Part shown: piece by piece, positions 9,426 to 32,000 of the stretch
Layout: every line of letters starts with the position of its first letter
How positions within the stretch are numbered: position 1 is the stretch's first letter
Assembly (NCBI RefSeq): GCF_000400465.1
Contig: NW_008806285.1
Location: forward strand, 270,001-302,000
DNA: 32,000 nt
Reading direction: 5' to 3'
From: Wallemia ichthyophaga EXF-994
Lineage: Eukaryota; Fungi; Basidiomycota
The notes under the pieces: generated by a model
Database searches by the model: none
Told to the model about the DNA's origin: nothing
The model's input: only the letters and a program-made list of their open reading frames with translations
Position numbers and translations under genes: made by a program

Positions 9426-9609
9426 ATCCTCTCTGGCCTTTTGGCTTAGATCAAGTGTAGTATCTGTTCTTCCAAGTTCGAACAACTTGGATCGCATAAC
9501 TTATGCGACTAACGTTCGATCTAATTTTTATCCGCGTCCAGCCGCCCTCACTGCTTGCATAGGATGGCTGGAAGATGGCCTTGCGTTGCACTACCGCATG
9601 TGCCGTCAG
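9426..9609 (+). ncRNA. U2: U2 spliceosomal snRNA
   Basis: GGCCTTTTGGCTTAGATCAAGTGTAGTATCTGTTCTT matches the U2 5' core, with branch-recognition GTAGTA at 9457..9462. Stem IIa TCCAAGTT/AACTTGGA, stem IIb TCGCAT/ATGCGA, IIc GTTCGA complementary to the IIa loop, Sm-like AATTTTTA at 9523..9530, and 3' stem IV with a TTGCACTAC loop. Ends are approximate. Confidence 0.97.
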
Positions 9610-9909
9610 CGCTCTCTTATCATTCTCATCAACCATTTTGCCATGTCTTTGCTACTTTTAGTGGTAATGACTTGATGATATGGTTGTCGAGTAAAGGCGA
9701 GTTTGCGGCATGACGGGAGTGTGCCGGTGTTCGAGCGTACAAAATAGCAACAATGTGATTTGCACGCACACACCTTTAGCACACCTCCAAACACCCACAC
9801 ATACAAATAAAATGCATTGATTAACAGTTATAAAATAATTTGGTAATAATTATCACGAATGTCGCTAGAAGTGAACAGATAGGATTATCGATTAACGTAA
9901 GTGTATATA

Positions 9910-12338
9910 TTAGCGTGTTGATTGATGCAAATGCGTGTGCGTCTGTAACGTGTTTAAGGTGTTTAAGGTGTTTGCGTTGTTCGAGTTGCTTGAGTTGCCT
10001 GAGTTGCCTGAGTTGCTTGAGTGGTTTGAGTTGCCTGTATTGCCTGTACTCCCCCCACCCGCCATATTCGATCGAACACCCAGTGGGTTCTTGGAATACG
10101 ACAGTCTGATTCCACCTCTAATTAATCCGTTGAGTGTATTCCCGTAGAGCTCGTGGAGTGTCTTAGTAGCCACATGTACATCTTCGAACTGTATTTGTGT
10201 TAGCGTAATTCTCACCCTTACGACACCCAACTCACCTCCACGAAACACATTGGTCCGTTCGCTTTCTGTCTAAATGACAACCTCTTAAATCCGCCCTGCT
10301 TACTAAATAATGCTCGCAGAGCATCCTCCAATAGACTAACCGGCTGTGATGGCGGTGGTGTGGTTAAATTTCCAACGTACAATGTCGAACAGGGTGGATT
10401 TTGATCTGCGGGATTCGTCGGTTTCAGTGGTGCTAAACTTGGTGCTGTATTCGATGTTTGACTTTGTGTTGATGTCGGTGTCAGTGTGTGTGTGTGTGTA
10501 TTTGTATGTGCATTCGTCTGTGTGTTTTTCTGTGCGTTCGCTTGTGCGCTTGTCTGTACACCCGTCTGTGCACCTGTTTGCGCTAATTGACTATGCAATG
10601 TGTGTATACTACTCGTTTGCAGACTGCCTGCTTGCAAACTACTCGATTGGGCTGGAGGTGGGGATGTTTTCGTAACCTGTACGTCATTCAATGCCAGGCC
10701 AATATGACTGGTAGTGGTGTTGCTGCTGGTCAAGTCTTGCGCGCTGTGTGATACATGTCCTCCACCCAGGTTGTGTCCTAAAGCCAATGCACTCAACCGC
10801 CTGCCCAGACTCTGACTAGCTAAGGCTGAGTTGGAATTGGGGTCGAGTGTTCTAGGCGATAGTGGCCTCATATGGCTCCCATTCCCATTTCCATTCCCAC
10901 TCACACTCCCATTTCCACTCACATTCCCACTCACACTGACACCACCTGTAACACCCCCATTGGTGTACATCGGTGGAGAGTACGCATCCAGACTGTTGAG
11001 AGGTGATAGTGTACTCGAATTTGACTTTTCGTGGTTACGAGATTGTCGCAGTTGTCCACTTTGCCCCGTTTGGCCTGACGGCGATAACGTATATTTGTTA
11101 CTTTGGAACGGGTCAAACCCACCCGATGGCGGTGTGGGTTCAGTATCAAATGGCCTAAACAATGTTTCTTGATTAGGTGAACAGATTGAACCAGTCGTAG
11201 GTGAGCTCGTTGCGTTGTGAAATGCCTCAAAAACAGCGGACGATCTAGGACCATCCCATGCAGAGTTGGATGGTCCAAATAGACTTGAATTGGAGGTCTG
11301 AGAGTTGAGTGAGGTTGATGTAGGTGGGTTAACTCGAGTGCCTTCTCTGAAACCATCTCTCGCACCAACACCAACACCTACACCTAATCCCACTCCTGCT
11401 CCCACTCCCAGTCCCACACCCTCCTGTGTCGAATGTGTGGCTTGCATATAGTTCTCCTCCTTCTTGGAACGCGTGTGCAGATTCTTCTTGGCCATCTCAG
11501 CCTTCAAAACACATCCACGCTCACTATCGATTTTGCGACCCGATAGGATATCCTTAGCTTCAAGAGCAGCGGGCTTACTCCTAAATTTTGCAAAACCTAT
11601 AGTCTGTTTTCTGGCCGAGAGCTGCTGAGCAGCGGTGACATTCATATTCAGATTCATGTTCATGTTGGCGTGCATGTGCATGTTGTTCGTATGCAGGTTG
11701 GCGGACTCGTCGACGGCGCTGCCGGGGGCGTTTTCACGCTCGGACATGATACTCGTGGAGGGGATGTGAGCGAGTGAGTAAGGGTCTTTGTGTGGCGGAG
11801 GGACAACATCTTTCGCAGGTATTTTGAGCGTCGCTGCTTCGAACTCTGCACTGAAAATGAACATGTTCTGGAACTCCCTGTCAGTCATATCGTCAGGGAA
11901 ACCGACGACGAAGATAGTGCTGATGTCGTCAGCGTTGGTGCTATGGCTGTGGATTTGAGACTGGGAGTGGTTGAAGCTGTTAGTACGATGCGCATTGAGT
12001 GGGAGTGGTGGAGGAGGCATGAATAGGGGATTAAAAGAGGATTGAGTATCATGTGCGTCTGATTCGGGGGATGATTTCAAGTCGACTGTGGGTGTACTGC
12101 CGTTGCCGTTGCCGCTGCTGCTGCCGCTGAAATCACCGCGCTGAGACGGATTAAAAGGCTCAACAGAAGCAGATAAATGAGATTTGGTAGGACTAGATTT
12201 ACTATTTGGATTGCTGACTGAATTTAAAAGAGAATTGTATCCGAAGAAAGGCTCATTCGATTTAGGCGATGAAGGTAGTGATAGTGTCTCCATATTATTT
12301 GGTATTGCCAGTATATCTTCATCCTCGATTTCTGTCAT
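9910..12338 (-). CDS. WHI3: Whi3/Scw1-like RNA-binding protein with two RRMs and long low-complexity regions
   Basis: RRM1: [20 protein letters not shown]...QTIGFAKF...[15 protein letters not shown]2: [16 protein letters not shown]...[19 protein letters not shown]|FED...[15 protein letters not shown]. Intron 10189..10235. Start taken as MTEIEDED (12338). Confidence 0.85.
9945..10055. repeat. Imperfect 9-nt tandem repeats (GTGTTTAAG; GAGTTGCYT) in the Whi3-like C-terminal exon
   Basis: Visible periodicity encoding NTLNTLNTL and GNSGNSSNS. Confidence 0.8.
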
Positions 12339-12766
12339 GGCGCCTGCTGCCGATTTCTCCTGCCGATTTCCTTTATTCTTGGTTGTGGGTGATTGGGAGA
12401 AACCCGCGTCTCGACAAGAGCACACGTGTTTTTTTTAAAATTATTGCGCGGTGACTGATTTTGGTGTATTTTATACTATTTACACGCGTTGCCCATACTG
12501 ATATGCATCTCCATGTGATTATAATATGCTTTGCAGCTTTGGGCTTACGTGGCAGCTGAGCTGCGCTGTGTTGATAACGGCGGCGTGGATGGTGGATTTG
12601 TGTAACTGGTGCAACTGCCGTGAGTACCTCGAGTGCTTTAGCTCGTCATGGTCCATGTCATAGCATATGTCATTGCCTTCTCCCAATACTCAGCGTGCAT
12701 GAACGCGGATTTATTAAGTAAGCGTGGCAGATATGATATTCATGTATTTTAAAACGACATTTTGAT

Positions 12767-13848
12767 TTAAATATCCAGTTCTGAATCATCACTATCCTCC
12801 TGTGCATTCTGCCCCTGTCTGATATGGTTTGGCTTGCTATCATAATCGCCGTCGTGATCCTGTTCCTCCTTCTTTGCAAAGTCGTGTGCATTTGTGTTTA
12901 CTGGCTTCAACTTGACTGCATCCAGCGCGAGGAGGAGGTTCTCCACATCTAAATAATTCCTTGGTCAGCCTCACCCCACACGCACCACACAAACCCACCT
13001 TTCTTGGTCGTCTGCTTCCCGTGCAACCCAATAGCAGCATCATTGGCACCCACTATCTGCTTCATAAGCGTCCCGCGTCTGTAAAATAGCAGTGTAGGGC
13101 AATTACGCTCTGGATAGCCTGCTATACACTGACTGCCAACGATGGAGACGAATTTCGTATGCGGGTATTCAGTGGCAAGCGAGTGGAGGTGCTGTCCAAT
13201 GATTCTACTCTCTTCGATGCTGAATTTGTACCGTTGTTAGGCGTAACTTACTCCCAATCAAACCAACTCACGCTTCTGAGTAGAGGAAACATATTACACT
13301 TGTTCCACCACGCTTGAGATTCTCTATACTATCATCATGAGGGTTGAATTGAGGGTCTGTGTGTTCCTTGCTCGCGTCTGTCACCTCGCGTGTGTAGTCT
13401 GGTCTCGCAATTGGATACATTCTGCCAAATTTAGCAGTGCTTTCGAGCTTCTGCATCTCCTCTATCCTTTTTTTGCGGTAGGAAAGAAGGACACGCTCAT
13501 CGTCGCTGTCATCAGCCTCCTCCGCCGCCTCAGCGAGAGTGTCCTCTGTAGCAAGTGAGAGACCAGCGTTTCTGATCTGGGAGTAGTCAATGTCCAGACC
13601 CTCTGGAGTGGATGGTCTCGAAGGTGGTTTCTGTGGTATAATTCCCTGTGCTCGCAGTGCATCGTTGCTAATAACGATATTGCTATTAGAGAAGACACTC
13701 GATTCAAATGTCAGGCGTACAATTCAGTGTCATCCGAGTAGCGTAATGCGCCTGTCGTTGGTATGTGTGGTTGATTCTCTCCTAGAAATGTTTTCTCGTC
13801 GCCGCCGCCGCCGTTGCCGCCTTGGGCCATATCGAATGGGTTGAACAT
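12767..13848 (-). CDS. PLP2: Phosducin-like protein 2 (PhLP2/VIAF), CCT co-chaperone
   Basis: Spliced DDTEF|NDALRAQGIIPQKPPSR...DERVLLSYRKKRIEE...KFGRMYPIARPDYTREVTDAS...YPHTKFVSIVGSQCIAGYPERNCPTLLFYRRG...DSDDSELDI*. Three introns. The start is uncertain (13848 or 13830). Confidence 0.9.
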
Positions 13849-13897
13849 TGGTGTTGGTCGTTGGTGTAGAAGAAATGCTTCTGTGTTCAACACCACC

Positions 13898-15500
13898 ATG
13901 TCATTCGTATACGCGCTTATATTCCAAATCTACACGCTCAACGCTATTCTCTCGTCGTACAGAGCACTCAAGAAGAACAGCGAGCGTGATAAGCGTGTCC
14001 AGCTGAGTGAGCGCCGTCGACAAATATCCTCGTGGCTCCAAATATGGATATGCTGGGTGAGTGGGCTACTTTCTTATAACTGATCCACTTCCCGCTTAAC
14101 ATACTCCGCCTCAGTTCATCTGGCTCAAACTGGGCAACCTCGTCGACTACTTGCTCAGCTGGATCTGGTTCTATTGGCAGATAAAGACTTTCATTCTCCT
14201 CACTTTTATTCTCACTAGCAGACAATCTGCCAGCGCGCTTTTCATCGACGCGCTCAAACCAACGCTGATGCCCTACGAGTATTATGCGGATGGTTTTTTC
14301 GCGCTGCTTGAGGACACGCACGCGATTGGGATGTGGGTGCTGACTGATATCATATACCGTGGCGTTAGGGATAACTTAGCTGACGTGGGTGTTCTGAGAC
14401 ACTACCTGAATCTCGCACCGGCGACAACAACAGCACCAGAAGCAGAAGCAGGAGCACACCATCCACCCAATCCCAAGAAGAAGGTCGTGCGCAGGCCAAC
14501 AGGACCTATTATCCGCCAGCGCAAGAACATGATAGCCAATTCCCAAAAATCACAGAACACACAAAGCAAAACAGGGCGTCCGAGTGTCGTGCTTAGACGG
14601 CCGCAGTCTGCGAAAACACCTGAACTCACACCTGCACCCGCGCACAGCGGCAAAGAAGAGGACGCAGCGCTCATCAACACCAAACCTACTTTCATGAGTA
14701 CTCCCAAGGCCAAAGCGTTACATGCGAGTGGAGATAATGTTCTTCACGCACCTCACGCACCCGACACACTCCACTCTCCTTACATACCAGGCAGGCTTCC
14801 TCACACTCCGCCATTTGTGCGGCTGACGAGGTCGCAGACGCGTGGAAATGCAAATGCAGCAACAGCACCAGCACTAACAGCTACAAGCGGTGATAAGGGT
14901 GGTGATTCTATAAGCAGTAGTAGTAGTAGTAGTAGTAGTAGTGGCAGCGAGGAGGACACACCGCCAGCACCTCCTCACACCCATAGCATAGCCAACATGG
15001 ATAGGAAGCGCAACGCTTCCAGTGCCTCTCTTAAGAGTGCGAGCAGTGCAAACAGTGCGAACAGCGCCAAGAGCGCGCAGAGCAACGAGCAGCCGTCATA
15101 CACAGTCCTTCGACGCGCTGACCCGAGTTCGAAGACAAGTGGGAGTGGGAGTGGGAGTGACGGCCAGAACAGCGGCAGTGACAGTGACAGCTCGAATGAC
15201 AATGACAGCGACAGCTCCACAGAAAACACAAAGATGCTCGATCAAAACGAATTAGCCACAACGCACACCCGCACCTACTCTTCAACCGCCGAGAACAAAA
15301 AACTTACATCCTCAAATATACCACGCAAGAAACGCATTGTAACTTTGCGCAAACAAGTAAATACAAACGCCAAACCAAACACGAACACAAACACGGACGC
15401 ACAAACACAACCACACCCTCCACGCAGACAGGCAGCTACACGGGGTAGAGGACTGAGACGACCTCCTATACGCGGCAGAGGGCGCGGACGAGCCACTTGA
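13898..15500 (+). CDS. TB2/DP1/HVA22 (REEP-family) membrane-shaping protein with a long disordered C-tail
   Basis: Exon 13898..14056, intron 14057..14114, then the long ORF. LSSYRALKK...WLQIWICW|FIW...LSWIWFYWQIKTFILL...ASALFIDALKP resembles the HVA22/REEP hairpin domain. About 370 aa of S/T/N/K-rich tail follow. Confidence 0.72.
14915..14943. repeat. (AGT)n microsatellite encoding poly-Ser in the REEP-like tail
   Basis: AGCAGTAGTAGTAGTAGTAGTAGTAGTAGT gives SSSSSSSSSS. Confidence 0.9.
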
Positions 15501-15528
15501 TGGGTTAAAATGCAACATATACACTAAA

Positions 15529-16901
15529 CTAAAACAGCAAGCTAGACGCGTACTCAATGTTGCCATTCGTCGATCTGAGAGCTTGAATAGCTTCTTCTCT
15601 GCCCACACCTAACTCCATCAACTTTGCTATTTTCTCTTCACTTATACCGTTGTTACTCCTATTTGAATCTGTATTTGTAGATGCTGCAGGATGAGATTGA
15701 GAAGCCGTGCTGCTTCCACCTAGAGTAGCGCCTGAGCCTGGGAACTTATCACCAGAGTGTGGTGGTATCGATGGCTGTTGAGCAATACCGCCTCCCTCTG
15801 CCGATTCCAACTGAGCTGGATCTTGATGGTTGTTCTTTGGTATCTCATGTTCCTAAGAGGTTGGGTTAGCGTGGGTGCGCTGTAGTGAAAGCTACACCTA
15901 CTGCCAAGAAAGGAATAACTATGTCTTGAATAATCATAGCGTTTTGCCGCAAGTCAATTACAGCTTGATGACGCTTGAGCATATCTAAACCGAACAATAG
16001 ATCAACGCCACTGCCTTCACTGAGAGGAAGAGTGAGTTTATATGTCTTACCAACCACACAATACGTACGTCACAGTGAATGAACACTGTAGGAGTATATC
16101 ACCAATCTGCATAGGTGCAGCGTGAATTCTTCCCAAGATCTTCGCAGTTCCTACACCTCGTGCAATACCTTGAAAGCGTGTATCAAGAAGACGCATGAGG
16201 TTGCAATCTTCAGCGCACTTTGGACTCATAATTGTATTTTGAGCGCCTGAATCGACGAAAGCTTTAACGTGGTGTTTGTTAACCTGTGTATCGATATAAA
16301 GCATCTCAACCATCCCGAATGTTTCTGGATTGTATTCGATTGCACGTTCAAACGACTCAGCTACGGCTTGTTGACGTATTTCTTCTTCGATCCGCTTCTG
16401 CGAGTCGATATCGAATGGATCTGAATTGAGCATTTCAGCCTGTTGGGTTTCAGCAACGTGTTTATTACGAACAGCTTGCTGCATCAGTTCGTAGAATTTC
16501 GGTGGATTCTTCTCTGCTGCTTCTGCTAGTTCTGGCTGTACCTGCTTCATCTGCTCGAGCAAATCTCGATTTCCTAGCAATTGTAGTCTCATCATCTCGC
16601 CGTCGTGTGCAACTTCTTTGCCCGCCACTTGAACCTTCCTTCTCAATCCGAGCATAGCATCTGCTGTGATGCCCTCGTCTTTGAGCTTGCGCGTGGGTTC
16701 TAAACTCAACTCGCTGTCGACATGTGTTATAATCTGCTCAGATGGTGGTATTTCTGACTCTGCCTCAAGCAGTGCTTGTAGATTATCCATTTCCATATCC
16801 GCACTGACTTCGAGCGTGTAAGTCTGCTAAGCTTGTGAGATTTGTATATGTGTGTGGCTGTATCCCACCTGTCCACTGTCCGTGACAAATGTCAAGAACA
16901 T
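15529..16901 (-). CDS. DDI1: DNA damage-inducible protein Ddi1 (UBL, retroviral-like aspartic protease, UBA)
   Basis: N-terminal [14 protein letters not shown]|TYTLEVS..., [12 protein letters not shown], protease motif [37 protein letters not shown], and C-terminal [37 protein letters not shown]. Three introns. Confidence 0.96.
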
Positions 16902-16995
16902 GGTGGTATATGATAAACAAGTTTAGATTATATTGATTGCCATACATTGATTGCGTTACATTGCTACACTTAATAAATATACTCGTTAGTTCCTT

Positions 16996-18470
16996 CTATT
17001 CCCCTCCGTCGCTCTCCTCGCTCTCCGCGTACACCACATCATCATTCTCGCTCTTCCCCTCAATCTCCCTTCGGAATGTCGACTTGACTCTCTCCATCAG
17101 CTTCTCAAACGGCAGCGACGTTGCCAGCTCTTTATCCATCCCGCAACTCCTGTACGTGATGTAACGCCACTGGTCTCTGAGCGTCTTGACAGACCACTCC
17201 CCCTTATACGTATCCATGCCCAGCGACTTGAAATTGATCACCCCACGCTCCTTGATATTCATGTCAAGTACGTGTTTAATCAGTATACCACAATCAGACC
17301 GCCTGAAATCTGATCCTGACCGGCGATTCGGAAGGTCACGTCCGCGTAGCTCATCTTCCCATTTGATACGACACTGGTGTGCTGAACGCTTTCTGCCCAT
17401 CTTCTCCTGTACAGTGACCCAGAAAGGATCGTGTCCATCTCTAGTCACGTGGTTTCGCTCATTCATCATTGGTATTACGATTGAGAGGTACTCATTCTTT
17501 TCATCCTCCGACCACAGTCCTTTGCGTCTTTCTGGACAAACAAACATTCGGCGGTAATGATCAGAGCACTCGTTAGCTGGACGCTCGACGATGTGCGATA
17601 TTTTTGTCCAAGAAGTTCCAAGTTGGGCATGTGCACTGCGTGAGAGTTAGTTTTTTTTTTTTTTGCATGTTTGCAGTCGTTCAAATGTTTCACTCACTCT
17701 AACAACCTATCGTCCTCGTCTTTCGTCCAGATTCCTTTGTTTGCATAAGGATGCCATCGAGCTCGAACATGCGTGTACACACTTGCTAGCACTCTATGTG
17801 GGACACATTCGGTAAGGTCACACCAGAAGTTGTCTCTGTTTTTCTCCTTCTTTGAAGCAAATATCCTCTCTCGGAGTTGATCATCGTCCAGGTTGTTGGT
17901 AATTTTGTACTTGCTTATCCAGTCATAGACGATTCTCCTCTCTTCTTCGTCGAATGTACCTTGTTTGATTTTCGTGAAATTATCATTGATTATCTTTATT
18001 TGAGGTGGGTATAGCCATCTAGTGTAGCGGTGTTCAGGAAGAACAGGCTCTGTCTCCCAGCCTTTATGAATTTTTCTGCCTTTTTTATGTAATTCTTCTG
18101 ATTGAGGTACAATTGTTGAAGGTGCATCGTGTGGTAGCACTGGATCTGTGACGCTGTTGCTGCTGTTGACGTCATTTCCGCGTGTCTTTTTATCCTTACT
18201 CGTGCTATCTATGCCATTTGTGCCATCGAAGGTTTGCTTTTTCTTTGACTTGTTGCGGTCAGATTCCTTGTACTCCTTGAGGGGAGCTAGAGAGGCTTCC
18301 GAATTAGGCTCCATTTTTACTCTCTTTCTTTCAGCGACGTCTGTATCTGCCTTCTCGGACCTACTCGAGAGATGGCCACGGCTGCTACGACGCTTACGAT
18401 TAACTTTCCTGATAGAATCCTTCACAACTAAATCTAAAGAATCCGCGATAACTTGACTTAGTGAGATCAT
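16996..18470 (-). CDS. Myb/SANT DNA-binding protein, Reb1/Nsi1/TTF-I-like
   Basis: KQGTFDEEE, FWCDLTECVPHRVLASVYTHVRARWHP, KGIWTKDEDDRLL|DAHAQLGTSWTKI, KGLWSEDE and HDPFWVTVQEKMGRKRSAHQCRIKW. Intron 17636..17697. Confidence 0.85.
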
Positions 18471-18535
18471 ATTTATTTGCCGTATTTGGAGATATCCCAC
18501 TCGTGACGGTGTACCACCAAGAGAAAGGCAGAGGA

Positions 18536-20462
18536 ATGGACACGCCTGGTTCGCCAACGCCCTCAAACACATCTCTATCGTCGATCAACGATGAAAACGA
18601 TATTAACTTTGAGACTGAAATACTCCAATCTCTCGCACTCGGTGAGTTGGCGGGTGCGCAAATGACCCCTAAAGGTGGCGCAAGGAATTCAATTTCATTA
18701 TCTATGGCATCAGCTCCAGCCACTGAACCACTGGAGAATCCAAATGGTCCAATCAGCAAACTCCCACTCGAGATACTCATACACATCTTACGTCTGCTCA
18801 ACAACCCAACGCACCTCCTCAACAATTTACTCGTTTGTAGGACTTGGTGTGCCTGTGGAATCGAGATTCTCTGGCATCGCCCTTCCTTCCCTGCCGCGAC
18901 TCCTTATGTCAAGTTCGCGCACATAATCGGTGGGCTGTATTCCAACGCGCCTACTTTTCAATACTCAAACTACGTCAAGCGTCTCAATTTTTCTAATATT
19001 CACAATTGGATTACTGATCCTTACTTCCTCCCTGTGGCAAAGTGTCTCCGTCTCGAACGGCTGACGTTGACCGGTTGCAAGAGTCTTAGTGATAGTAGCC
19101 TGGAATTCGTTCTCGAGAACTGCAAAAACATACTGGCTTTGGATTTATCTGGTATAAACAAAATGTCAGACAAGACACTCAAGGTTATTGCCAATAACTG
19201 CAAGAAGCTTCAAGGAATGAATTTGACAGACTGCGAGAGTATTTCTGACGAAGGCGTTGTTGAGCTTGCTAGAGGTTGTCAGCATATGAGAAGGGTGCGT
19301 GTCTTGATTTCCTCCCTTGCCATCGTTGACTTAGATATTTTAGTTGAAATTGTGCAATCTGAGGCAGATATCTGATATCACCGTTATAGCTATAGCTGAG
19401 AATTGTCCAGATTTGCTAGAGGTAGACTTCACAAAGTGCTCCATCTCATCCTCCTCTGTCAGTTTATTTTGGAAGAATGGCATTGGGGCACGTGAATTCA
19501 GATTAGGACAGTGTGCCTTTATAGATGACTCAGCATTCCCTTCACCCTCTACAACATCAAACATTCCTCATCACTACACACTAATCACCCAGCCACAAGT
19601 AAAACACTTTGAAGTCCTCCGTCATCTCGATCTAACGAGCTGCACATCGATAACCGACGAAGCGATAAAAGGAATCATAGCGCATGCGCCCAAAGTGCGA
19701 AATTTAGTTCTAGCGAAATGTTCCAATCTCACCGACGTTGCGATCAAAAACATATCAAAATTAGGAAAAGCTCTTCATTCATTACACCTTGGACACGTAA
19801 CGGCGATTACCGACGAGAGTATTATAGTACTTGCTAGGATGTGCACGCGTATCAGATATATAGATCTGGCATGCTGTCCCAACTTGACGGACAATTCTAT
19901 CACAGAACTGGCCAGAAACATGCCGAAATTGAAGCGTATTGGATTGGTGAGAGTGACAAATCTAACGGACATTTCCATTATAGCGCTCTGCGATCACTAT
20001 ACGCAGCTCGAGAGGATACATTTATCTTATTGCGAGAAGATCACAGTAGATGCCGTACACCATCTCGTAGCCAGGCTCCAAAAGCTGACGCATCTCTCGC
20101 TCAGCGGTATACCAGATTTTAGGAGGCCTGAGTTGCAGAGGTTCTGTCGAGCGCCACCAAAGGAATTCAGCGAGCACCAACGTCAAGTATTCTGTGTATT
20201 CAGCGGTAAAGGGATACACGACTTAAGAGCATACATGCAGGAGGAGTACATGAGAGCTCGAAGAAGCCTGTTTGAGGACATACCACCATTCCAGAATGCG
20301 AGCGAGGGCGGAAGCGAGGCGAGCTCAAGCCCGGCAAGAACAAGACCTAACAGAATGTTAGAGGCTCTGGGTCTGAGCAGCTCAGATACGCAGCAGCTTG
20401 GCCTATCCAACGCTGAACTACGCCAGTTGGCGCTGTCTAACTTTGAGCAGCACAATCGGTAG
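18536..20462 (+). CDS. GRR1: SCF F-box/LRR substrate adaptor Grr1
   Basis: F-box PISKLPLEILIHI...LLVCRTWCACGIEILWHRP, then YVKRLNF, CLRLERLTLTGC, multiple LRRs, CTRIRYIDLACC, LKRIGLVRV, LERIHLSYC, LTHLSLSG, and FCRAPPKEFSEHQRQVFCVFSG. Intron 19295..19343. Confidence 0.93.
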
Positions 20463-20628
20463 CATAATAATACAACATATAGCATAGCATATTCACTTTA
20501 TTTTAGAGCAAACTTTTTTTAGTAATTGTTATTTAAATTACTCTTTTTGCATTGATTGAGACATATTTACTTGGGATAGATAGCCACATGAATAGAAAAG
20601 GAATCATGAATTTGAGTGAATAAAGTCA

Positions 20629-21360
20629 TTACATGTATTGCGAGATCCATCTGAAGCCTTCACCGTAGCCTTGACGCATAACGACGGAGCACATGAAGAC
20701 TTCAATAGGACGAATGTCTTTAAGGGGTACCTTGCCCTTGCCGGTAGTTTGCCAGAGACCGAGAGACTGACGGAGTTCTTCTTCAGAGACAGCGCCAGGA
20801 GCGTCAATCTTGTTACCGAGAACGAGGAAAGGAACCCTAGAGAGTTCCTCGATGGAGAGCAGAGCGTCGAGCTCTATTCTAGTCTCGTTCATTCTCTCCA
20901 CGTCTTGACTGTCGACTAGGAAGACAACGCCGTCAACTTCAGGGAAGTAGTCCTTCCACAGTCTTCTCGCTTGTTGGTGACCGCCTAGATCGTAAGTGGT
21001 GAATTTAACAGCGCCAATAGCGAGTTCTTCCGAGGTTGGGTGCAAAGTCGGCTGGAGTGTTGCCAGTCTGTCGTTCTTAAGCATGTGGAGGAGTGTCTGT
21101 GAATTGGTGTGTTGGTTAGCAGATAGCTGGGGAGCGGCGGGGATCGACCCACAGTCTTTCCTGCATTATCCAAACCAAGGAACAAGATCTTGGCATTCTT
21201 GCTGGCGAGTCCTGAGCGGCGGCGGTGTGAGCTGTTTGTGTCGTGTGTTGTGATTGTGATTAACACACCTAAAGAAGCGAGTACGTCCCAGAACCAATCT
21301 AAAATCCACCTAATGTGTATCAATGTGCTGCTCTCTCGATGTGCTTCTTTCTCCCCACAT
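20629..21360 (-). CDS. SAR1: Small COPII GTPase Sar1
   Basis: [14 protein letters not shown]|[20 protein letters not shown]|[11 protein letters not shown]...[16 protein letters not shown]...NKID...[23 protein letters not shown]. Three introns; the first (21310..21358) splits the ATG. Confidence 0.97.
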
Positions 21361-21444
21361 TTTTAAATTTCGTCGTCGTCGTCGAGTGCCAAACGTACTC
21401 GAGTGCAGACTTAGATTACAGCGTCAACGAAAGTTGAAAAATAA

Positions 21445-22745
21445 ATGTCGCTATTTGGAAATAACAGCGGTGCCGGTGCAGGCGCAGGTGGTGGATTTAG
21501 GTGGGTTTATTCCCTATGTCCCTGCATCCTGCTCAATCTTACAGCTTTGGTCAATCTTCGCAGCAGCAGCAACCTGCTCAGTCTGGCGGATTCAGCTTTG
21601 GTGGCGCATCTGGATCCACAGCGCCTAAGCCATCTCTCTTTGGTGCGGCTGCTGGTACTAGCAACAGCGCGTCAACTGGGACTACCACTCAACAGCCTCC
21701 ATCGAGTGGATTTGGAGGATTTGGAGGATTCGGTCAGCAGCAAACTTCCCAGCAACCCGGTCAACAAACACAACAGCCAGCCCAAACTGGTGGTTTGTTT
21801 GGAAGTCAACCACCAGCTTCATCGACGACGGGCACGGGTTTTGGAGGTTTTGGACAGTCGCAGCCACAGCCACTGCAACAGCAACAACCTCAGCAGTCTC
21901 AGCAGCCCGCTACTTCGAATAGCGCCTTAGGGTTTGGGTTGGGAGGTGGGAGCACCGCGTGAGTATCTCAGATGCAGCACTACGCGCTCATACTGACAAA
22001 CTACAATAGCAATACAACAGGTGCTTTCGGAAGTACGATTGGTGGTGGATTGGCTGGCACAGGTGGTCCGAATAACTCACAACAGCCCCAGCAATCACTC
22101 ACCCGGACAACTAAATACAACGACCTCTCAGACGCACATAAGAAAGTGATAGACGATATAGATGCCCACATACAAGGTAGAAACCACATAGCATTGAACC
22201 TCAAGTCGGAGCCACTGGGCAAGGACGTGGATAGATCATCAGTGCTGCTTGAGCAAGTATCGAACGATTTGATGAGTCTGAAGAGCACACTTTCGCACAC
22301 TTCAGCTGCTCTCGACAGTCTCAAAGAGGACACAGACACTGATACAGTCCGAGCACTCACCATGACGCGCATAATTGATGGCTACAAACGCCCACAAGAG
22401 AGTGGCGCGTGGCTCAAAACATATAGGGACTTCCCTCATGAGTACTTTACACAAATGTCAGTAGATCTTAAAGACAGAGCGACTAAATATACCAGTACAC
22501 TTGAGCAGATAGAAAGACATTTGAGATATCTGCTCAGCACCAACAGCCAGCAGCAGGCCATGTACACACCACACAGTATCGCTCAAATACTGCAAACGCA
22601 GCATTCAACCTTTATGAGTCTCGCAAGCCACGTCGCAGAGCTGCAGAGCGCGACGGAAGGACTCAAGGAGGGATACAGGGATATATGGAGAAACAAGACC
22701 AAATCGTACGCTGATCCGTTCACGCTGCCGAATGAAGGCGCTTAG
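21445..22745 (+). CDS. NUP49: FG nucleoporin, Nup49/Nup58-like
   Basis: N-terminal FG/SLFG repeats with Q/T/S spacers, then a coiled-coil region starting TRTTKYNDLSDAHKKVIDDID and ending WRNKTKSYADPF. Two introns at about 21501-21544 and 21959-22009. Confidence 0.75.
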
Positions 22746-22793
22746 AGGGTGAAGATAAAGTGTAATTTATTCTAGTATTGATTTTTAAGGTGA

Positions 22794-23412
22794 TTAGACC
22801 AATTTCGTGAAGAGCTTTGGAGCAGCGCAGTCGTCGACGGCGTGCAAGAAGCTGTAAGGGGTGAGAGGGGTGTGTGCGTGCTGCGGTTTACTCACTGGAC
22901 TATAAATCGGGGAAATGTTATTGGTTAAGCATAACAGTTAAGGCAGATTACTTACGCCTGTAGAAAGAATCACTTAGATATCGTTGCTAGCCTATGAATC
23001 GCACTCACATTTCCTCAGCACAGTTCTCGCCTTCGAATCCTTTGCCTGCTTCGACTTTTTCGTTGCAGTGCTCGAAGTGGTGCTTCAAGTGAGCGACGTG
23101 GGAGTTGTTCTCACATTCTGAATAAGCGTCAGGAGTGCGGCGTACAGCAAGCAGATTCATTCACCTTCACGGATAGCTGGGTAGATCTGAGTGGCATGAG
23201 AAGGCTAAGCGTTGTGAGCCAGCAACACTCACATCTTCTGGCTCCTCTTCCTCCTCCTCTTCTTCCTCCTCTTCCTTGTCTTCAGATTCCTGTTGTGGCT
23301 CTTCCTGTGTCTCTTCCTGTGGCTGCTCCTGTGGCTGCTCCTCGCCCTCATCTGCGTACCCAACTGAGTAGACCGCGTCGACTGCTGAACTTAAATAATC
23401 TGCTAATCCCAT
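22794..23412 (-). CDS. QCR6: Cytochrome bc1 hinge subunit Qcr6
   Basis: Acidic N-terminus, then EPED|IYPAIRE|ECENN...LKHHFEHCNEKVEAGKGFEGENCAEEMLHFLHAVDDCAAPKLFTKLV*. Six exons, including 22-, 2- and 4-nt exons. Confidence 0.93.
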
Positions 23413-23479
23413 TTTCTGCTCTTTGGATATTTGAATTCCTCGGTGTGTTGGTTAGAAACGACGAAGCGAAAAAAACTAA

Positions 23480-24434
23480 ATGGAGTTCTGGGATATGTTC
23501 AAGACGCGCAAAGCTGGTGTGTCGTAGGCGTTGAGTGTCTATTAGCTTCTGTTCATGCGCCACAAATTAGATATCCTGCGCCTCGTCGACGCTGCCCAGT
23601 CTGGCTGTGAAATTAGGCAGGCGAGGGTAGAGGTCTATTCACTGCAGAAGACTTTCAACGACGCCGTTGATCTCCTTCCCTCATTCGATCAGAAGAGCTA
23701 CTCCACTCAGCTCGTTCAGATTGCAAGTATCCTCAACGAGAAGGAAGCTGCAGTAGCGCCGAAACCCAAATTCAGCTTTAAAGATAAAGCACGTGCAAGA
23801 CAGGCCGCATCTGTAACTACTGCAAGTGCTGGGAGTGCTGGGAACGCTTCAATTGGCCCTGCTAAGACTACGCTAGACCAGCACCTTCACCCCCACAATC
23901 ACGAGTCAGCCTTGGCAGCTACAGATATACACCACACGCTACATATCATCAACGCCCATCAAGGCGGTCTCACTGTCGATCGCGTCTCCGATAGCGTCCT
24001 CGTCGCTCCTGCAGACACTCACTCACCGTCTAGCTGCCACATCCACAATGTAGAACGAAGCATAATCAACCTCATTCGGGTAGACGGCAGTCTGTTCCTC
24101 AATAACATCAACCACGCTATCATTATAGCTGAATGTCATCAGGTGCGTTAGTACTTTTGCTGTTTGAGACATTCGGGAATGACTGACACGTTTTTAGTTC
24201 CGTATACACAAATCTCACAACGTTACCATCGCACTCTCCATTTCTTCCACTGCTATCATGGAATCGTGCACCAACATCACTTTCGTCAAGCATCCAAAGG
24301 CTACGAACATACCCGTGGTATCTGACTTTGATGATCCCGTTTCTTCATCCAATTTCACATATAGCGAGAACACCGGGCGAGTTGAGGATATAGTAAAGCA
24401 GCCCACTCTCGCACAGTTAGCATACCTTCCTTAA
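23480..24434 (+). CDS. TBCC: Tubulin-folding cofactor C (C-CAP domain)
   Basis: N-terminal helical region with LPSFDQKSYSTQL...PKPKFSFK, then C-CAP SCHIHNVERSI...VDGSLFL...IIIAECHQ|FRIHKSHNV...AIMESCTNITF...VSDFD. Introns at about 23517-23570 and 24143-24197. Confidence 0.88.
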
Positions 24435-24731
24435 TTCATTACTCCACGCTAGCATATGCAAGATCTTTGTACACCACCAATACATTCATAGACGTTGCAC
24501 ACTCCAAATGCAAGCCAGGCATCATCCAATATACCTAAATCCATTTGATTTATTCTGATAGTACAACATAAAAGAAAAAAAAGAAAAGTCCCGTTGCAAT
24601 TAGCAGTGGATAGCTTTTAAGCATATTTGAAAGTAAGTAAGTAATTAAAATCAGAGAGCATCTCCAAGAATGTTCCACATCCCGTAGAAACGATAAATTC
24701 AAGCACGAGCGAAAGACCGGTTTCCTCAAAT

Positions 24732-26633
24732 CTAAGCTGATTCCTTCTTCGATGTATACTCGCGGTGACCTGAAGCTTGCGAGTTTTCATCGCTCTCGAA
24801 TCTCTTATCAGAGTGATCGACATTGTCAGAATGCTCGATATTTTCCGGATTACCATAGATATCCATCTTGTTGGCCTCCATGACATCTCTCCTGGAATTG
24901 TAACCGGGTGGGACCCACTTCTCGCTTGCCCAGGCTGTCAAGCCCTTCGTGGAGTACATTATGTCCACATTCTCGAGCGATAAACCTGCGGTTTCGTAGA
25001 GGAAGAAGAAGACAAAGACTGACGCGAAGAGATTGCAGCCAGCGAAGATGTAACCGTAAGCGAAGCCAATGTCACCAGTGATGAATGGCGAAAAGAAGGA
25101 GATAAGGAAGTTCCACGTCCAGTTCGAAGCCGTCGCCAGCGATGCCTGTCTTGCTCTTGTTCTCGTTGGGAACGTCTCACCAGTGACAATCCAGCAAGCT
25201 GGACCCCAAGTAGTGGCGTAACTGGCAATGAACAAGCAAGCTGAGACAATCATGAGATCTCCCATACCTTCGTATTCGCTTGGAGGGCGACAAACACCGA
25301 CGGAGGCGAAAATAAGCAGCCAAATCTTTATAGCAGTTAGCAAAATGCAGTTACTCTCGGAGACAACTCACTGCTATGGAAAAGTTAGCATGATCTAGGA
25401 GAAAGATTTTCACTACTCACTTTGCCATAAACCTCCAATGTAAAGTGGTCTACGACGTCCATAGTGTTCTAGCACATAAAGACTGAAGAAGACGCAAACA
25501 AAGTTCACAACACCCATAATAATTTGTGTAATGTAAGAATCTTCGATACCAACCGACTGGAAGATAGTGGCACCGTAGTAGAAGAAGTAGTTGGCACCAG
25601 TCAGCTGTTGCAGACTTTGCATCATCATTCCAAGGAAGGTTCTGTAGGCCAATTTCTTCGAGCCAGGAGAGCCGACGAAACATTCAATCCACGACTGCCA
25701 GAATGGAGCGTCATTCTCCCTCTCCATGTTGATATTTGTTTCAATTTCGCGGTAGTCATGCTCAACAACAGCTCTATCATAGTCTGTCTTGATACCTCTA
25801 ATTCTTTCGAGCGCATTTCTTGCGTCGTCGGTTCTGTCGTTTTTCATGAGCCAACGTGGTGATTCTGAGATTATCAGCAAAACCCCGAGAAATCATCAAG
25901 CTACCCACCTGGAAACCGAGCGTGAAAGTGAGTGCATAACCAAGACCAACGATGATTCTCCAACTCGCGTCACTGTCTAGCTGGCGGGTACCGTAACAAA
26001 AGCAATATGCCAAAAGCATACCAAATGTAATGGCAAGTTGGTAGCAAGCAACCGCTGTACCTCTGAAAGAAGCTACGACGCACTCGGACATGTACATTGG
26101 TACCGCTGCTGATAAAGCACCAACACCCAGACCAGCTATCAGTCTACCGACTGCGAATTGCTGCCACACTTCAAATGTAGTGATCTGTACGAGGAATCCA
26201 ATACTGACTACGATACACTCGATCGTCATGGCCCATCTTCTCCCTAAAAAGTCCGCGAGAGGAGCACCAAGAAGAGCACCACCAAAGGTACCGATCGACA
26301 AAAGACCAACGATAAGACCCTCTCTGACTCGGGAAAACTCGTAAGTCTCGCAGTTCATACCATTAGCATCACATCCCTCTTGAATGTCCGAAAATCGCTC
26401 GAGGAAGTCCCTCATGAGAAGCATGTCTGATATCATACCAATATCATAACTTAGTGCGCTGTGAGCGGGGAGGTCTCGTAATGACATTCTGTACTCACCC
26501 AAAAACCATACCTCCAACGGAGCTGCAGGTCTCAGTTAGTGGTGTTTTGCGGAGATGCGGGGCCCTACGATAGTGCTGCTATGAAAATTGTCACAAGCCC
26601 TAGCGGCTGTCCATGTACTTTAAAATTAAACAT
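24732..26633 (-). CDS. MFS sugar porter (hexose transporter), array copy 1
   Basis: MFNFKVHGQPLGLV...GGMVFGYDIGMISD, ADFLGRR, GRLIAGLGVG..SAAVPMYMSE, PESPRW, MMQSLQQLTGANYFFYYG, GRRRPL, WGPACW..TGETFP, SNWTWNFLI, YETAGLSLE. Five introns, one pair flanking a 2-nt exon. Confidence 0.96.
24991..25186. repeat. 196-bp direct repeat identical to 27818..28013
   Basis: GTTTCGTAGAGGAAG...CTCACCAGTGA is identical in copies 1 and 2, with divergent flanks. Confidence 0.9.
25555..25914. repeat. 360-bp direct repeat identical to 28383..28742 (includes a whole intron)
   Basis: Read base by base, GACTGGAAGATAGTGG...CTACCCACCTGGAA, constant offset 2828. Overlapping antisense ORFs in the track have identical translations over the tract. 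Confidence 0.92.
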
Positions 26634-26833
26634 TGTGGTTGTAGTTCGAGATGAAAGGGCAGCTCGGATTGACTTTACAAGTATGGTATATGAATGCGTA
26701 CCTGATGGTCATGTGCACGTCATACGGTGCGCATACGGAACTCTTCCTTGTTTGATGATCACCGGGGGTGACTCAATGCGGATAAAATCCCCAAGAATGC
26801 TAAGGGAAGAGCTTCTTCGTATCTCATAATCTG

Positions 26834-27298
26834 GTCTAGCTGCATTATCGAGAATGCTAAACGGGGTATTGCGGGAATTATGCATGCATGGCGGCTATAA
26901 TTTCAATACTTGTCAAAAATAAAAACAAAGACGCTAAACTTCCATCTGAGTGTCTTCAGGTACGCTGTTGTTTCAGTAAGTTGTAAAAGACTGACACCGG
27001 AACACTTCCGTATACACAAATCTTACAATGTCATCATCCTACTTTTTACTTTTTGTCCGTTATCATACGACCGCATAATGGCACCCCTTTCGTCAAGAAA
27101 CCGAAGCGTGCTGGCACATCGGAAGCCTCCGACATGGCTGATCACGTCTCTTGATCTAATTTAAAGGATCATGGGAACTCTGGGCTGACTGAGGATATTT
27201 CTAGATGCGTTCTTATCATACTACAAGTATATATTGCTGAGATGTCTTTTTTTCAGTAACTCATTTACAACACTACCATACTCAATATGCAAGATCTT
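26834..27298 (+). pseudogene. Decayed duplicate of the TBCC 3' half and its 3' flank (relic 1)
   Basis: Colinear matches to 24030..24467: GTCTAGCTGC, TGTC(A/T)TCAGGT, GACTGACAC, an identical 18-mer TTCCGTATACACAAATCT (24198 vs 27006), TTTCGTCAAG and ATATGCAAGATCTT (24454 vs 27285). The intron acceptor AG is lost and the frame is disrupted. Confidence 0.85.
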
Positions 27299-27606
27299 CA
27301 TACAAAAACAGATGATGCAAACTCTCGCTACTAAGGGATATCACTGACTGCAATCACGATCTCGCCCCAACTGCAAGCCCCGCCCAGTCACATATCTAAG
27401 TCGGCTAAAGTTTAAAGTAAATTTATTCGAAAAATTTGATAATACAGGCATCATTTTGATGACATTAGGAAGCCTTTAGCAATTCGTGATCACCAGTTAT
27501 GGATAGATTAGTAGGTAACTTGAAATATTGGAGAGCTGTCCTTTGCATCCGGCAGAAATGAAAAAATTGATGAAAAGTGAGATGAAGTCTTCCATGCAGC
27601 TTACAT

Positions 27607-29523
27607 TTAAGCTTTGTTTCCTGCATCGTCGTTATTTCCTGATGATTGAGAGAATCTGTCACCGTCAGAGTGATCGAACGTGTACTTTTCAGCGTTCGAA
27701 GACTCCAAAGCATCTCCCCTTCGAGACATTCCTGGTGGAATCCATTTTTCTGAGCCCCAAGCTGTCAAACCTTTCGTTGAATACATCTCATTGACGGCCT
27801 CCAAAGACAAATCAGCAGTTTCGTAGAGGAAGAAGAAGACAAAGACTGACGCGAAGAGATTGCAGCCAGCGAAGATGTAACCGTAAGCGAAGCCAATGTC
27901 ACCAGTGATGAATGGCGAAAAGAAGGAGATAAGGAAGTTCCACGTCCAGTTCGAAGCCGTCGCCAGCGATGCCTGTCTTGCTCTTGTTCTCGTTGGGAAC
28001 GTCTCACCAGTGATAATCCAACACCCTGGTCCCCACGTTGCGGCATAGCTGGCAATAAACAGACAAGCTGAGACAATCATGAGATCTCCCATTCCATCGT
28101 ACTCCGCTGGAGGACGTGCAACCCCTACTGAAGCAAAAACAAGCAACCAAATCTGAGACAAAATTAGCAACGATTTTATCGAAATTTCTCTTACTCACAC
28201 CTGTGAAAGAGTCATTAAGGGTTCAAGAGGAAGATTTCCGCTACTCACTTTGCCATAAACCACCGATGTAAAGTGGTTTACGACGACCAAAGTGCTCCAA
28301 GATGTAAAGACTAGCAAAAACGCAAACGAAGTTCACGACCCCGAGAATTATTTGGGTAATGTAAGAGTCATCGATACCGACAGACTGGAAGATAGTGGCA
28401 CCGTAGTAGAAGAAGTAGTTGGCACCAGTCAGCTGTTGCAGACTTTGCATCATCATTCCAAGGAAGGTTCTGTAGGCCAATTTCTTCGAGCCAGGAGAGC
28501 CGACGAAACATTCAATCCACGACTGCCAGAATGGAGCGTCATTCTCCCTCTCCATGTTGATATTTGTTTCAATTTCGCGGTAGTCATGCTCAACAACAGC
28601 TCTATCATAGTCTGTCTTGATACCTCTAATTCTTTCGAGCGCATTTCTTGCGTCGTCGGTTCTGTCGTTTTTCATGAGCCAACGTGGTGATTCTGAGATT
28701 ATCAGCAAAACCCCGAGAAATCATCAAGCTACCCACCTGGAAGGAACCAAATGCCAATTCCAAGGGTGAATGTAAACGCAAAACCGAGACCGATGATGAT
28801 TCTCCAACTAGCGTCGCTATCTAATTGACGGGTACCAATACAGAAACAGTATGAAAGCAAGACACCTAAGGTGATTGCGAGCTGGTAGCAAGCGACAGCC
28901 GCACCTGTTCATAACGTTAGAGCAAAATTTTCTTCAAAGGGCACACCTACCTCTGAAAGACGCTACGACGCACTCGGACATGTACATTGGTACCGCTGCT
29001 GATAAAGCACCAACACCCAGACCAGCTATCAGTCTACCAACCGCGAGTTGCTGCCAGACAGTGAAGGTGGTTATCTGTATGAGGAATCCAATGCTGACGA
29101 CGATACACTCAATTGTCATAGCCCATCTTCTGCCGAGGTAATCTGCAATAGGAGCACCAAAGATAGCACCGGCAAGGGTACCGATGGAGAGAAGACCGAC
29201 GATAAGGCCTTCTCTGACTCTGGATAATTCATAGTTGCTACAGTTCATACCGTTGGAGTCACATCCTTCACGGATGTCTGAAAAACGCTCTAGGAAATCC
29301 CTCATGAGAAGCATGTCTGAGATCATACCGGTATCATATCTGGAGTGAATGTTAACGGCGGCATAACGCAGATTCAGTCTATACACACCCAAAGATACCT
29401 CCTCCGACAGATCTATGGGTCTTGATCAGTTGCAAAGTTCGGGGATGCGGGGACTTACGATAATAACGCAATGGAGATTGTCATAAGCCCCACCGGCTGA
29501 CCCTTTATTTCGAAATTGATCAT
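27607..29523 (-). CDS. MFS sugar porter (hexose transporter), array copy 2
   Basis: MINFEIKGQPVGLM...GGGIFGYDTGMISD and the same sugar-porter motifs as copy 1. Six introns, including 28905..28950, which copy 1 lacks. Confidence 0.96.
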
Positions 29524-29897
29524 AGTGGTTGTAATTAGAGGCAAGATTAGGCTACTCGAGCTTTACATAAGTGCGAATGGGCACGGTCGAACATTACGAC
29601 GAGCTGCATGATGAATTTGGTACCTGACTCTTGTCATGTGCAAGCAATACGAAGATAATCCAAATTCAATGGCAAAAAAAAGCCTGGATATAGACTGGTG
29701 CTCATTGATGGGTCGGCAGCCGTTTCCGTAACTACACACTCGCTCTCCAGCTGCCATAACCACAATTTTCACCGGAGTATACTATTTTCCGACCGCGTGT
29801 CTGAAAATCCATTCCTCAATATTTTTAACCACGCTACCAGCCTCGCGCTTATTAAAGCGAGGCCCATATGGTGCGTCGTTGTCACAAAAAGCTTAAA

Positions 29898-30082
29898 GAA
29901 TGACAGCGGAGAGGTTCCGTCTATACCATCACATAACATGACTTGTTTACTATCCATTATCTAAACAGTCATCACGTTTTCCTGAACTCATACTTTCATC
30001 AACTGTCGGTCAAGTATACCAAAGCTGCTGTCTTACCAATGGTGTCTGACCTCAACGATGGTGTCTTCCTATTCAAATATCC
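29898..30082 (+). pseudogene. Decayed duplicate of the last TBCC exon (relic 2)
   Basis: GAATGAC...GTTCCGT matches the TBCC intron/exon junction. Residual translations SHNMTCLLSI (vs SHNVTIALSI) and VKYTKAAVLPMVSDLNDGV (vs VKHPKATNIPVVSDFDDPV). Confidence 0.7.
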
Positions 30083-30656
30083 TACTTTACATATCTGCTG
30101 TTCCCTCAGCATTGCTGCTCATCCCATCTTTAACAGACAAGCATCTCTTCAATCGTGATGATGATTCGGAAATATGAGACAACCATGAGCTGTCACAACG
30201 AGCATGCATTCATGAGATGGCATGCATTCCCGAAATGTATTCTTAGTAGCTACTCCACAAAGAACAGTGATCACCGATGATACGCTCTCTCTACGCGCTC
30301 ATCCCGAAATCCACAATCACTATATCAATTTCACGCCATCTACAACGCACACAAATTCACAATCAAAATTCGAAAAGGGAGAATCAATGTGAACGTTACA
30401 GTGACACTCTTTCTGCACGATCATTTCAAAATCCGCAATCGCCATACCAATGTCACGCAATCTCAATGCACACATTCTTGGGAAGAAGCAAATTCATTTG
30501 AGAGCACAGGTATTATTTTATTTGCGCAAGAATTATCTAAGCAAGTCATAGTAAGCAATTAGTAAAATGAGAGCAAACCTTGGAAAGTTCTATGTCCTAT
30601 AGAAGCGAAAAAGCAAATTAAAAAAGAGAGGAGGAATATAAGACTTCCTGAAAATC

Positions 30657-32000
30657 TTAAGCCTTCTTGGCTGCGTCTTCGTGCTGATCTGAAGCTTGAG
30701 AGAACCTCTCACCATCCTCAAATCTCTTGTCGACGTTCTCGCCATTCTCATCATGATATGTATCAAGCTTGGCCGACTCCATGACATCCCTCCTATTTTC
30801 ATAGCCAGGAGGTGTCCAAGCTCTGCTCTTCCATGGCTTCAAGCCATCGGTTGAGTACATTTCGTCTACTGCCTCAAGAGATAAACCGGCAGTCTCGTAG
30901 AGGAAGAAGTATACGAAGACTGACGCAAATAAGTTACAGCCAGCGAAGACGTAACCATAGGCGAAGCCAATGTCACCAGTGATGAATGGTGAGAAGAACC
31001 CGATGAGGAAGTTCCATACCCAGTTTGATGCGGTGGCAATGGATGCTTGTCTGGCTCTGGTTCTCATTGGGAACGTTTCACCAGTGATAATCCAGCAGGC
31101 TGGACCCCAAGTAGTTGCGTAACTGGCAATGAACAAGCAAGCTGAGACAATCATGAGATTACCCATGCCCTCGTTCTGATCTGGTGGGCGAGCAACACCG
31201 ACGGAGGCAAAAATGAAGAGCCAAATCTAAAGAGAGATTAGCAATGGCTAATGGTATCTATAAACTACTCACGGCTGTAGAAAAGTCAGTAATATTCAGG
31301 GAGGAAGATTTTCATGACTTACATTGCCAAAGACCACCCCAGAAGAGAGGACGACGACGTCCAAAGTTCTCTAAGACGTAAAGTGATGCGAATGTGCAAA
31401 CGAAGTTGACGGCACCGAGAATGATTTGTGTGATGAACGAATCTGAGAGACCGACCGATTGGAAGATAGTGGCACCGTAGTAGAAGAAGTAGTTGGCACC
31501 AGTCAGCTGTTGCAGACTTTGCATCATCATACCAAGAAGCGTTCTGTAGACCAACTTCTTCGAGCCATGGTGACCAATGAAACACTCCACCCAGGACTGC
31601 CAGAATGGAGACTCAACTTGTCTTTCAATTTCAATACGGCCAGAAATCTCTAGGAAGTCGTGCTCGACAACGGTTCTTTCAAAGTCTGTCTCAGCACCTC
31701 TAATTCTCTCGAGCGCATGTCTTGCCTGTTCAGGCTTGTTGTTCTTCATCAACCAACGGGGAGATTCTAGCGCATCGTTAGTAAGGAAGGGTTGAAAACA
31801 TAAGTATTCACCTGGTAAGAGCCAGATACCACAACCGAGAGTGCAAGTTAACACGAAACCGAGACCGATAATGATTCTCCAACTCGCGGCGCTCTCTAAT
31901 TGACGAGTACCAATGCAGAAGCAGTATGACAGTAGAATACCGAAGGTGATTGCCAGTTGGTAACAAGCGACAGCCGTACCTGTTAAATGTGGTAAGATGA
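30657..32000 (-). CDS. MFS sugar porter (hexose transporter), array copy 3, 5' part outside the window
   Basis: AVACYQLAITFG, PESPRW, QQLTGANYFFYYG, GRRRPL, WGPACWIITGETFP, SNWVWNFLIGFFSPFI and YETAGLSLE. More diverged from copies 1 and 2. Confidence 0.95.

Follow-up and report, generated by a model that had tools for sequence, protein, structure and literature searches.

In the basidiomycete Coprinopsis cinerea, annotation from long reads lists 57 exons of only 2 nucleotides (nt), distributed over 50 genes, together with 13 exons of 1 nt and 27 of 3 nt (PMC12230235). Exons of 1 nt have also been described in the CYP621A P450 genes of Fusarium, where SRA transcriptome reads confirm them (PMC12940212), and in Arabidopsis APC11, where the confirmation again comes from RNA (PMC4674806). 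Here we analyze a 32,000-nt stretch of the genome of Wallemia ichthyophaga EXF-994 (contig NW_008806285.1, positions 270,001 to 302,000; hereafter the window, whose own numbering is used below), in which three tandem sugar-transporter genes, copies 1, 2 and 3, each very probably contain a real internal coding exon of 2 nt that is included constitutively, judging from its sequence and that of its relatives. We call this exon with its upstream intron A and downstream intron B the micro-exon unit.

The unit belongs to the known class of ultra-short exons and is no new kind of element. As in Coprinopsis, also a member of the Basidiomycota, the 2-nt exons are internal, lie between short introns, break the reading frame if omitted and are missed by standard predictors. 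The Coprinopsis exons are transcript-supported, whereas the Wallemia exon is known from homology and comparative anatomy, and it occurs in a Wallemiomycete sugar-transporter family that offers four paralogous instances and three clean losses of both introns. The resemblance to CYP621A and APC11 is that an over-long "intron" hides an AG-N-GT arrangement, that an intron-less homologue fixes the number of residues and that the surrounding motif is conserved; those RNA-confirmed exons are 1 nt long and lie in other genes and lineages, while the Wallemia exon has 2 nt. The stwintrons of filamentous fungi (PMC12403724) are likewise made of two adjoining canonical short U2 introns that are spliced in consecutive reactions, but a stwintron has its internal intron inserted into a splice signal of the external one and retains no nucleotides between the two, whereas each Wallemia intron is complete and 2 nt stay behind. 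Micro-exons of at most 15 nt in plants (PMC8831610) are similarly conserved, frame-critical and systematically missed or misplaced in annotation, but usually have long flanking introns, in contrast to the Wallemia flanking introns, which are at the minimal length for the genome. With the Wallemia cases, the known range of 2-nt exons would reach beyond the Agaricomycetes into the Wallemiomycetes, an early-diverging group, and would include sugar transporters.

A probable 2-nt exon in three tandem transporter genes

All three genes lie on the minus strand of the window, whose reverse complement we read directly and scanned for splice patterns. A sequence-only reading had proposed a 2-nt exon between two short introns in each copy, and exon and introns matched that proposal base for base in all three (Table 1). 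Paired consensus short introns no more than 12 nt apart occur solely at these three sites when both strands of the whole window are considered (Markov-1 expectation 0.19). The same arrangement is seen in a fourth W. ichthyophaga gene, which lies at another locus and encodes protein P0007 (about 62% protein identity). In all four genes the flanking introns are complete and 46–49 nt long, with AG acceptors preceded at 10–11 nt by a YTRAY-like branch site. The CTAAY branch sites that had been reported throughout hold, among the three copies of intron A, for copy 1 alone (CTAAC); copy 3 has CTGAC there and copy 2 AATGAC.

The exon would supply codon positions 2 and 3 within the motif GG-L-W-Q-[x]-I/V-W of an MFS (major facilitator superfamily) hexose transporter, in the helix after the conserved GRR loop; judging from the general fold, this helix is probably transmembrane helix 9 (TM9). 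To the left and right it would be bounded by two independent minimal spliceosomal introns of 46–49 nt with perfect GTRAGT donors, YTRAY-type branch sites and YAG or AAG acceptors. The micro-exon model was aligned with its 120 best homologues, of which 112 are non-Wallemia basidiomycete proteins. Every one of the 112 shows an uninterrupted GG[LIV]WQ-x-x-W, in which x is usually Ser or Ala, and the predicted product GGLWQ-S/T-IW fits all of them ungapped; the intron-less relatives described below have exactly one codon at this place. The exon's length and position are also kept where intron interiors have diverged, with four paralogues retaining 2 nt at the same codon.

When all GT/GC-AG solutions with one or two introns were enumerated for each copy, the micro-exon solution was the only one common to all three, and it alone has consensus donors at both introns in every copy. 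Other solutions that keep both flanking exons are few and each is confined to one copy; copies 1 and 3, for example, have one further two-intron solution each, which relies on a weak donor and an intron of 39 nt. Deleting all 96 nt from donor A to acceptor B leaves CAA N/ATT and shifts the frame. In the flanking exons, third-codon-position identity between copies 1 and 3 and between copies 2 and 3 is 0.58–0.69, lower than the all-site identity of 0.76–0.84, and so these exons are under purifying selection. A second strain keeps all three units, the single difference being a SNP (single-nucleotide polymorphism), 25350 C>T, in intron B of copy 1.

Two related classes were considered for the unit and rejected. 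In a stwintron the signals of both introns would not be intact as they are here, and in Wallemia the 2 nt must remain in the mRNA since removal of the 96 nt shifts the frame. A recursive splice site, with a zero-length exon at AG/GT, does not match either, because in each of the four genes AG and GT are separated by 2 nt that the frame needs.

Public gene models and competing explanations

Several points limit the case for a 2-nt exon. In-frame read-through of intron B is available in copy 1 (IVSESNCILLTAIK) and copy 2 (IREISIKSLLILSQ), although not in copy 3, so the earlier statement that the 2 nt are required to close the frame holds strictly for copy 3 and is too strong for the other two. 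A profile of the four junction segments, compared with a collection of 5.8 billion proteins in search of a transcript-derived junction peptide, gave 85 candidates, none more than 66% identical, which speaks neither for nor against the exon, and an exact-pattern scan of JGI metagenome and metatranscriptome contigs for the spliced-junction DNA gave 0 matches. In copy 2, for example, the predicted spliced junction would lie within the 30-mer GGTGGTTTATGGCAAAGTATTTGGTTGCTTG. In EXF-994 the copy 1 micro-exon may have been released from selection, its gene being frameshifted elsewhere (below). Finally, the mode and order of splicing that we propose follow the general pattern of short-intron fungi: introns A and B would each be recognized by intron definition and would probably be removed consecutively, not simultaneously, because just 2 nt separate the acceptor of intron A from the donor of intron B, too little for both sites to be occupied together. 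In fungi with short introns each intron is recognized as a unit (intron definition), so there is no minimum exon length, and this, in place of exon definition, is the likely mode here because the flanking introns are minimal in length. Whichever of the two introns went first, the second reaction would receive an ordinary substrate.

The read-through solutions bear on the public annotation. All five public protein models of micro-exon genes are wrong at the junction, and each is wrong in a different way: P0001 lacks SIWLLVFASVG, P0002 translates intron B as IVSESNCILLTAIK, P0005 lacks 27 residues, P0006 is frameshifted and P0007 contains the translated intron sequence CECKLSLLT. It might be argued that splicing really proceeds as in such models, with intron B coding for an insert of 10–14 amino acids or with an upstream donor or a downstream acceptor deleting 11–27 residues of the helix, and that the 2-nt exon is a construct on paper; the NCBI models P0001, P0002 and P0005 do use junctions of this type. 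We regard this as very improbable. The public models disagree with one another, each breaks a motif that is ungapped in all 112 homologues, and their junctions require acceptors within the GTGAG of a perfect donor. The read-through inserts of copies 1 and 2 (10–13 amino acids) are unconserved and unrelated to each other, the intron B interiors are 7–30% identical, and copy 3 has no such solution at all. The main immediate value of recognizing the 2-nt exon is the correction of annotation: counts of the transporter family, studies of domain gain and loss and expression analyses in W. ichthyophaga, a model halophile, inherit the error.

Copies 1 and 2 contain two tracts of 100% identity, of 360 nt (25914..25555 = 28742..28383) and 196 nt (25186..24991 = 28013..27818); by their sequence, these are gene-conversion tracts. 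Tandem paralogues that exchange sequence in this way are not independent witnesses, and the three-fold replication that had been offered as independent evidence for the exon loses that status. Copy 1 of EXF-994 has in addition lost 16 nt at 25914/25915 relative to copies 2 and 3, which makes its model coding sequence 1670 nt, not divisible by 3. This loss hits the helix (probably TM6) just upstream of the PESPRW motif and sits exactly at the edge of the 360-nt tract. In another strain (GCA_004917845.1, L009) the 16 nt are present, the region of the 360-nt tract is about 30% different, and the micro-exon model of copy 1 gives an intact open reading frame (ORF) of 561 amino acids; the annotation of that strain has no gene over this copy (L009 6417..9605) in spite of the intact ORF. 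It looks, from these comparisons, as if a recent gene conversion from copy 2 into copy 1 broke copy 1.

The frameshift of copy 1 and the missing gene call in the second strain could suggest that the micro-exon copies are decaying pseudogenes and their tandem introns a functionless leftover, but this is scarcely credible. The ORF is complete in copy 2, intact for copy 1 in L009 and open across the part of copy 3 that lies in the window, the exons show the substitution pattern of purifying selection, and the splice signals are all perfect in four paralogues. The copy 1 frameshift is itself strain-specific and recent, and located at the edge of a conversion tract.

A regulated switch is a further possibility, in which skipping of the 96 nt would cause a frameshift and nonsense-mediated decay and so tune transporter levels, for example to salinity or sugar supply. 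Removal of the whole unit leaves 1 + 0 nt and does shift the frame, the AG/GT/GTGAGT of copy 2 contains a competing GTGTGA donor, and a micro-exon switch that depends on glucose is described for Trichoderma Xlr2 (PMC11121469). Set against this, a W. ichthyophaga transcriptome study reported no more than one exon-skipping event in the whole genome (PMC3849046), the optimal signals on both introns favor efficient constitutive use, and the intron-less paralogues work without a switch. We consider such regulation quite improbable and constitutive inclusion of the 2-nt exon the better explanation.

Splice signals and intron lengths

GTRAGT donors are found at all eight introns that flank the micro-exon (four genes), but at only 3 of 11 other introns of these genes (Fisher one-sided p 0.002, with cases that are not phylogenetically independent), and the distance from the branch-point A to the acceptor is 11 nt in seven of the eight. 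Exon positions −3 to −1 before the intron B donor read GCA, GGT, GCC and GTT. These features suggest that the splice signals of the flanking introns are more tightly constrained. Strong donors fit a need for intronic signals, because an exon of 2 nt cannot contribute to pairing with U1; the consensus donors would compensate for the absent exon bases.

The sequence-only reading had also suggested a "length-constrained tandem-intron unit", and this is not supported. All introns of the transporter family are 42–49 nt long, other introns keep their lengths too (intron 2 is 49, 49 and 49 nt and intron 1 is 46, 46 and 49 nt in copy 2, copy 1 and copy 0, a fourth array member considered below), and the P0007 gene has a 49-nt intron B. 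We used paralogue introns as the length control because a histogram of strict GTRAGT introns in the window (19 candidates vs. 13.7 by chance, with 6 of the 9 in the 46–49-nt peak being the introns studied here) is too weak to stand for the genome-wide distribution. The divergence of intron interiors that had been noted applies to intron B, where the ungapped identity between copies of 7–30% is at or below the random level and yet the 46-nt length and the branch-site position are the same. Intron A contrasts with this, as its interiors are still 0.62–0.72 identical, which equals or exceeds the identity of third codon positions. A MAFFT alignment suggests compensating 7-nt indels in intron B.

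Because all eight donors are perfect, the branch spacing is 11 nt and the two introns are only ever present or absent jointly (four genes vs. three), one could suppose that the two introns and the 2-nt exon act as one coupled unit with rules of its own. We think this rather unlikely. If true, splicing would have to follow a fixed order and loss could occur only by a route through spliced mRNA (reverse-transcriptase-mediated), and the family would be a natural series on how the spliceosome handles adjacent splice sites.

Distribution, history and genomic setting

The family is larger than the three paralogues first recognized: the W. ichthyophaga genome has at least seven members, and a fourth member of the array, copy 0 (P0003; L001 1501..3311), lies directly upstream of copy 3, just beyond position 32000. 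Copy 0 carries introns 1, 2 and 4 but neither intron of the micro-exon unit, so the array mixes both states. Three Wallemia genes in all lack the unit and have a single uninterrupted codon at the site, namely copy 0, the P0004 gene and Wallemia mellicola P0008, the last being roughly syntenic with the P0007 gene and its sister in a neighbor-joining tree. Neither intron A nor intron B occurs alone; both are present in four Wallemia genes and absent from three. The codon is not always Ser or Thr, as had been supposed from the three copies, since the P0007 gene encodes Phe here and the Wallemia relatives without the introns encode Cys or Gly.

Bootstrap values in this tree, computed on unrooted splits, are 100 for P0007 with W. 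mellicola P0008, 99 for array copies 0–3 and 94 for the array with P0004, and the micro-exon unit occurs in both of the lineages separated by the deepest Wallemia split. In the simplest history the unit would have arisen once, before the gene family diversified within Wallemia, then have been copied by tandem duplication and maintained solely through purifying selection on reading frame and splice sites; at least three losses would each have removed both introns precisely and simultaneously. Transfer of the unit between paralogues by gene conversion may be an alternative to this ancestral origin. Independent parallel gain of both introns at identical positions in the P0007 and array lineages was rejected as unparsimonious.

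Recombination with a spliced cDNA would be expected to leave exactly 1 + 2 + 0 nt, as seen at these sites, and we infer from these clean double losses an indirect sign that the mRNA contains the 2 nt. They also qualify the earlier claim of selection on a minimal exon. The micro-exon is retained because its loss would destroy the protein, and to that extent the claim survives, but the arrangement as such is dispensable and not selected, because three Wallemia relatives have cleanly lost it and three other basidiomycetes (the Coprinopsis, Naematelia and Clavulina homologues, with no intron at the site) do without the introns as well. The four genes with the unit and the three without it form a compact natural comparison for ordered splicing and concerted intron loss.

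Each of the three Wallemia genes without the introns has an NGT codon here (TGT, GGT and GGT), and the copy 2 micro-exon is GT. It may be, speculatively, that GT was the ancestral micro-exon and that the CA, CC and TT copies drifted away from a GT that competed with the adjacent GTGAGT donor.

The three window genes are tandem paralogues of the MFS sugar-porter family. The copy 2 ORF matches Pfam Sugar_tr (PF00083) over residues 19–488 with E = 2.2e-122 and 409.6 bits, far above the gathering cut-off of 22.3, and this full-length match places it among the MFS sugar porters. Its best database matches are W. ichthyophaga proteins, followed by basidiomycete general substrate, hexose and glucose transporters.

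Table 1. Positions of the micro-exon units, genes and neighboring features (window numbering unless another locus is named)
Feature	Position	Strand	Description
Copy 1 intron A	25374..25420	−	47 nt; upstream CAA A; GTGAGT donor, TGCTAAC branch, CATAG acceptor
Copy 1 micro-exon	25372..25373	−	CA; positions 2–3 of codon ACA (Thr); product WQTIW
Copy 1 intron B	25326..25371	−	46 nt; GTGAGT donor, TGCTAAC branch, TAAAG acceptor; next exon ATT TGG
Copy 2 intron A	28201..28248	−	48 nt; upstream CAA A; GTGAGT donor, CACAG acceptor
Copy 2 micro-exon	28199..28200	−	GT; positions 2–3 of codon AGT (Ser); product WQSIW
Copy 2 intron B	28153..28198	−	46 nt; GTGAGT donor, CTCAG acceptor; next exon ATT TGG
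Copy 3 intron A	31275..31322	−	48 nt; upstream CAA T; GTAAGT donor, TACAG acceptor
Copy 3 micro-exon	31273..31274	−	CC; positions 2–3 of codon TCC (Ser); product WQSIW
Copy 3 intron B	31227..31272	−	46 nt; GTGAGT donor, TTTAG acceptor; next exon ATT TGG
P0007 gene unit			CAG T; intron GTGAGT..GCAG, 46 nt; micro-exon TT; intron GTAAGT..TTAG, 49 nt; GTT TGG; product WQFVW, codon Phe
Copy 0 (P0003) site	L001 ~2724		CAA TGT GTT; neither intron A nor B, one codon
P0004 gene site	L003 ~2746		CAG GGT GTA; neither intron A nor B, one codon
W. mellicola P0008 site	L005 ~7160		CAG GGT GCA; neither intron A nor B, one codon
Copy 1 sugar-porter gene	24732..26633	−	6 exons; introns 26568..26523, 26498..26450, 25908..25865, 25420..25374, 25371..25326
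Copy 2 sugar-porter gene	27607..29523	−	7 exons, 6 introns of 44–49 nt; complete ORF of 545 amino acids
Copy 3 sugar-porter gene	30657..32000	−	5′ part cut by window end; intron 4 at 31811..31767
Copy 1 exon 2	26499..26522	−	24 nt, between 46-nt and 49-nt introns
Copy 2 exon 2	29389..29412	−	24 nt, between 46-nt and 49-nt introns
Copy 2 intron 3	28950..28905	−	after ..SFR codons
Copy 3 intron 3, 3′ end	~31980..32000	−	at window edge
G6PD, C-terminal part	3819..4823	+	
Brix-domain protein	8334..9059	−	
Ddi1-like aspartyl protease	16047..16796	−	
LRR protein	19344..20462	+	
TBCC-domain gene	~23555..24434	+	

Other introns of the family vary as well. Only copies 2 and 3 have intron 3, which is precisely absent from copy 1, copy 0, the P0004 and P0007 genes and W. 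mellicola; a MAFFT placement of the truncated copy 3 that left it without intron 3 was overruled by direct reading of the 3′ end of that intron. The presence of introns 1, 2 and 4 also differs between paralogues, which makes this a family with lively intron gain or loss. The short exon 2 is misread in the public models P0001 and P0003, where an adjacent intron is read through and gives spurious N-terminal inserts. The neighbors in positions 1..24500 of the window are ordinary genes (last five rows of Table 1).

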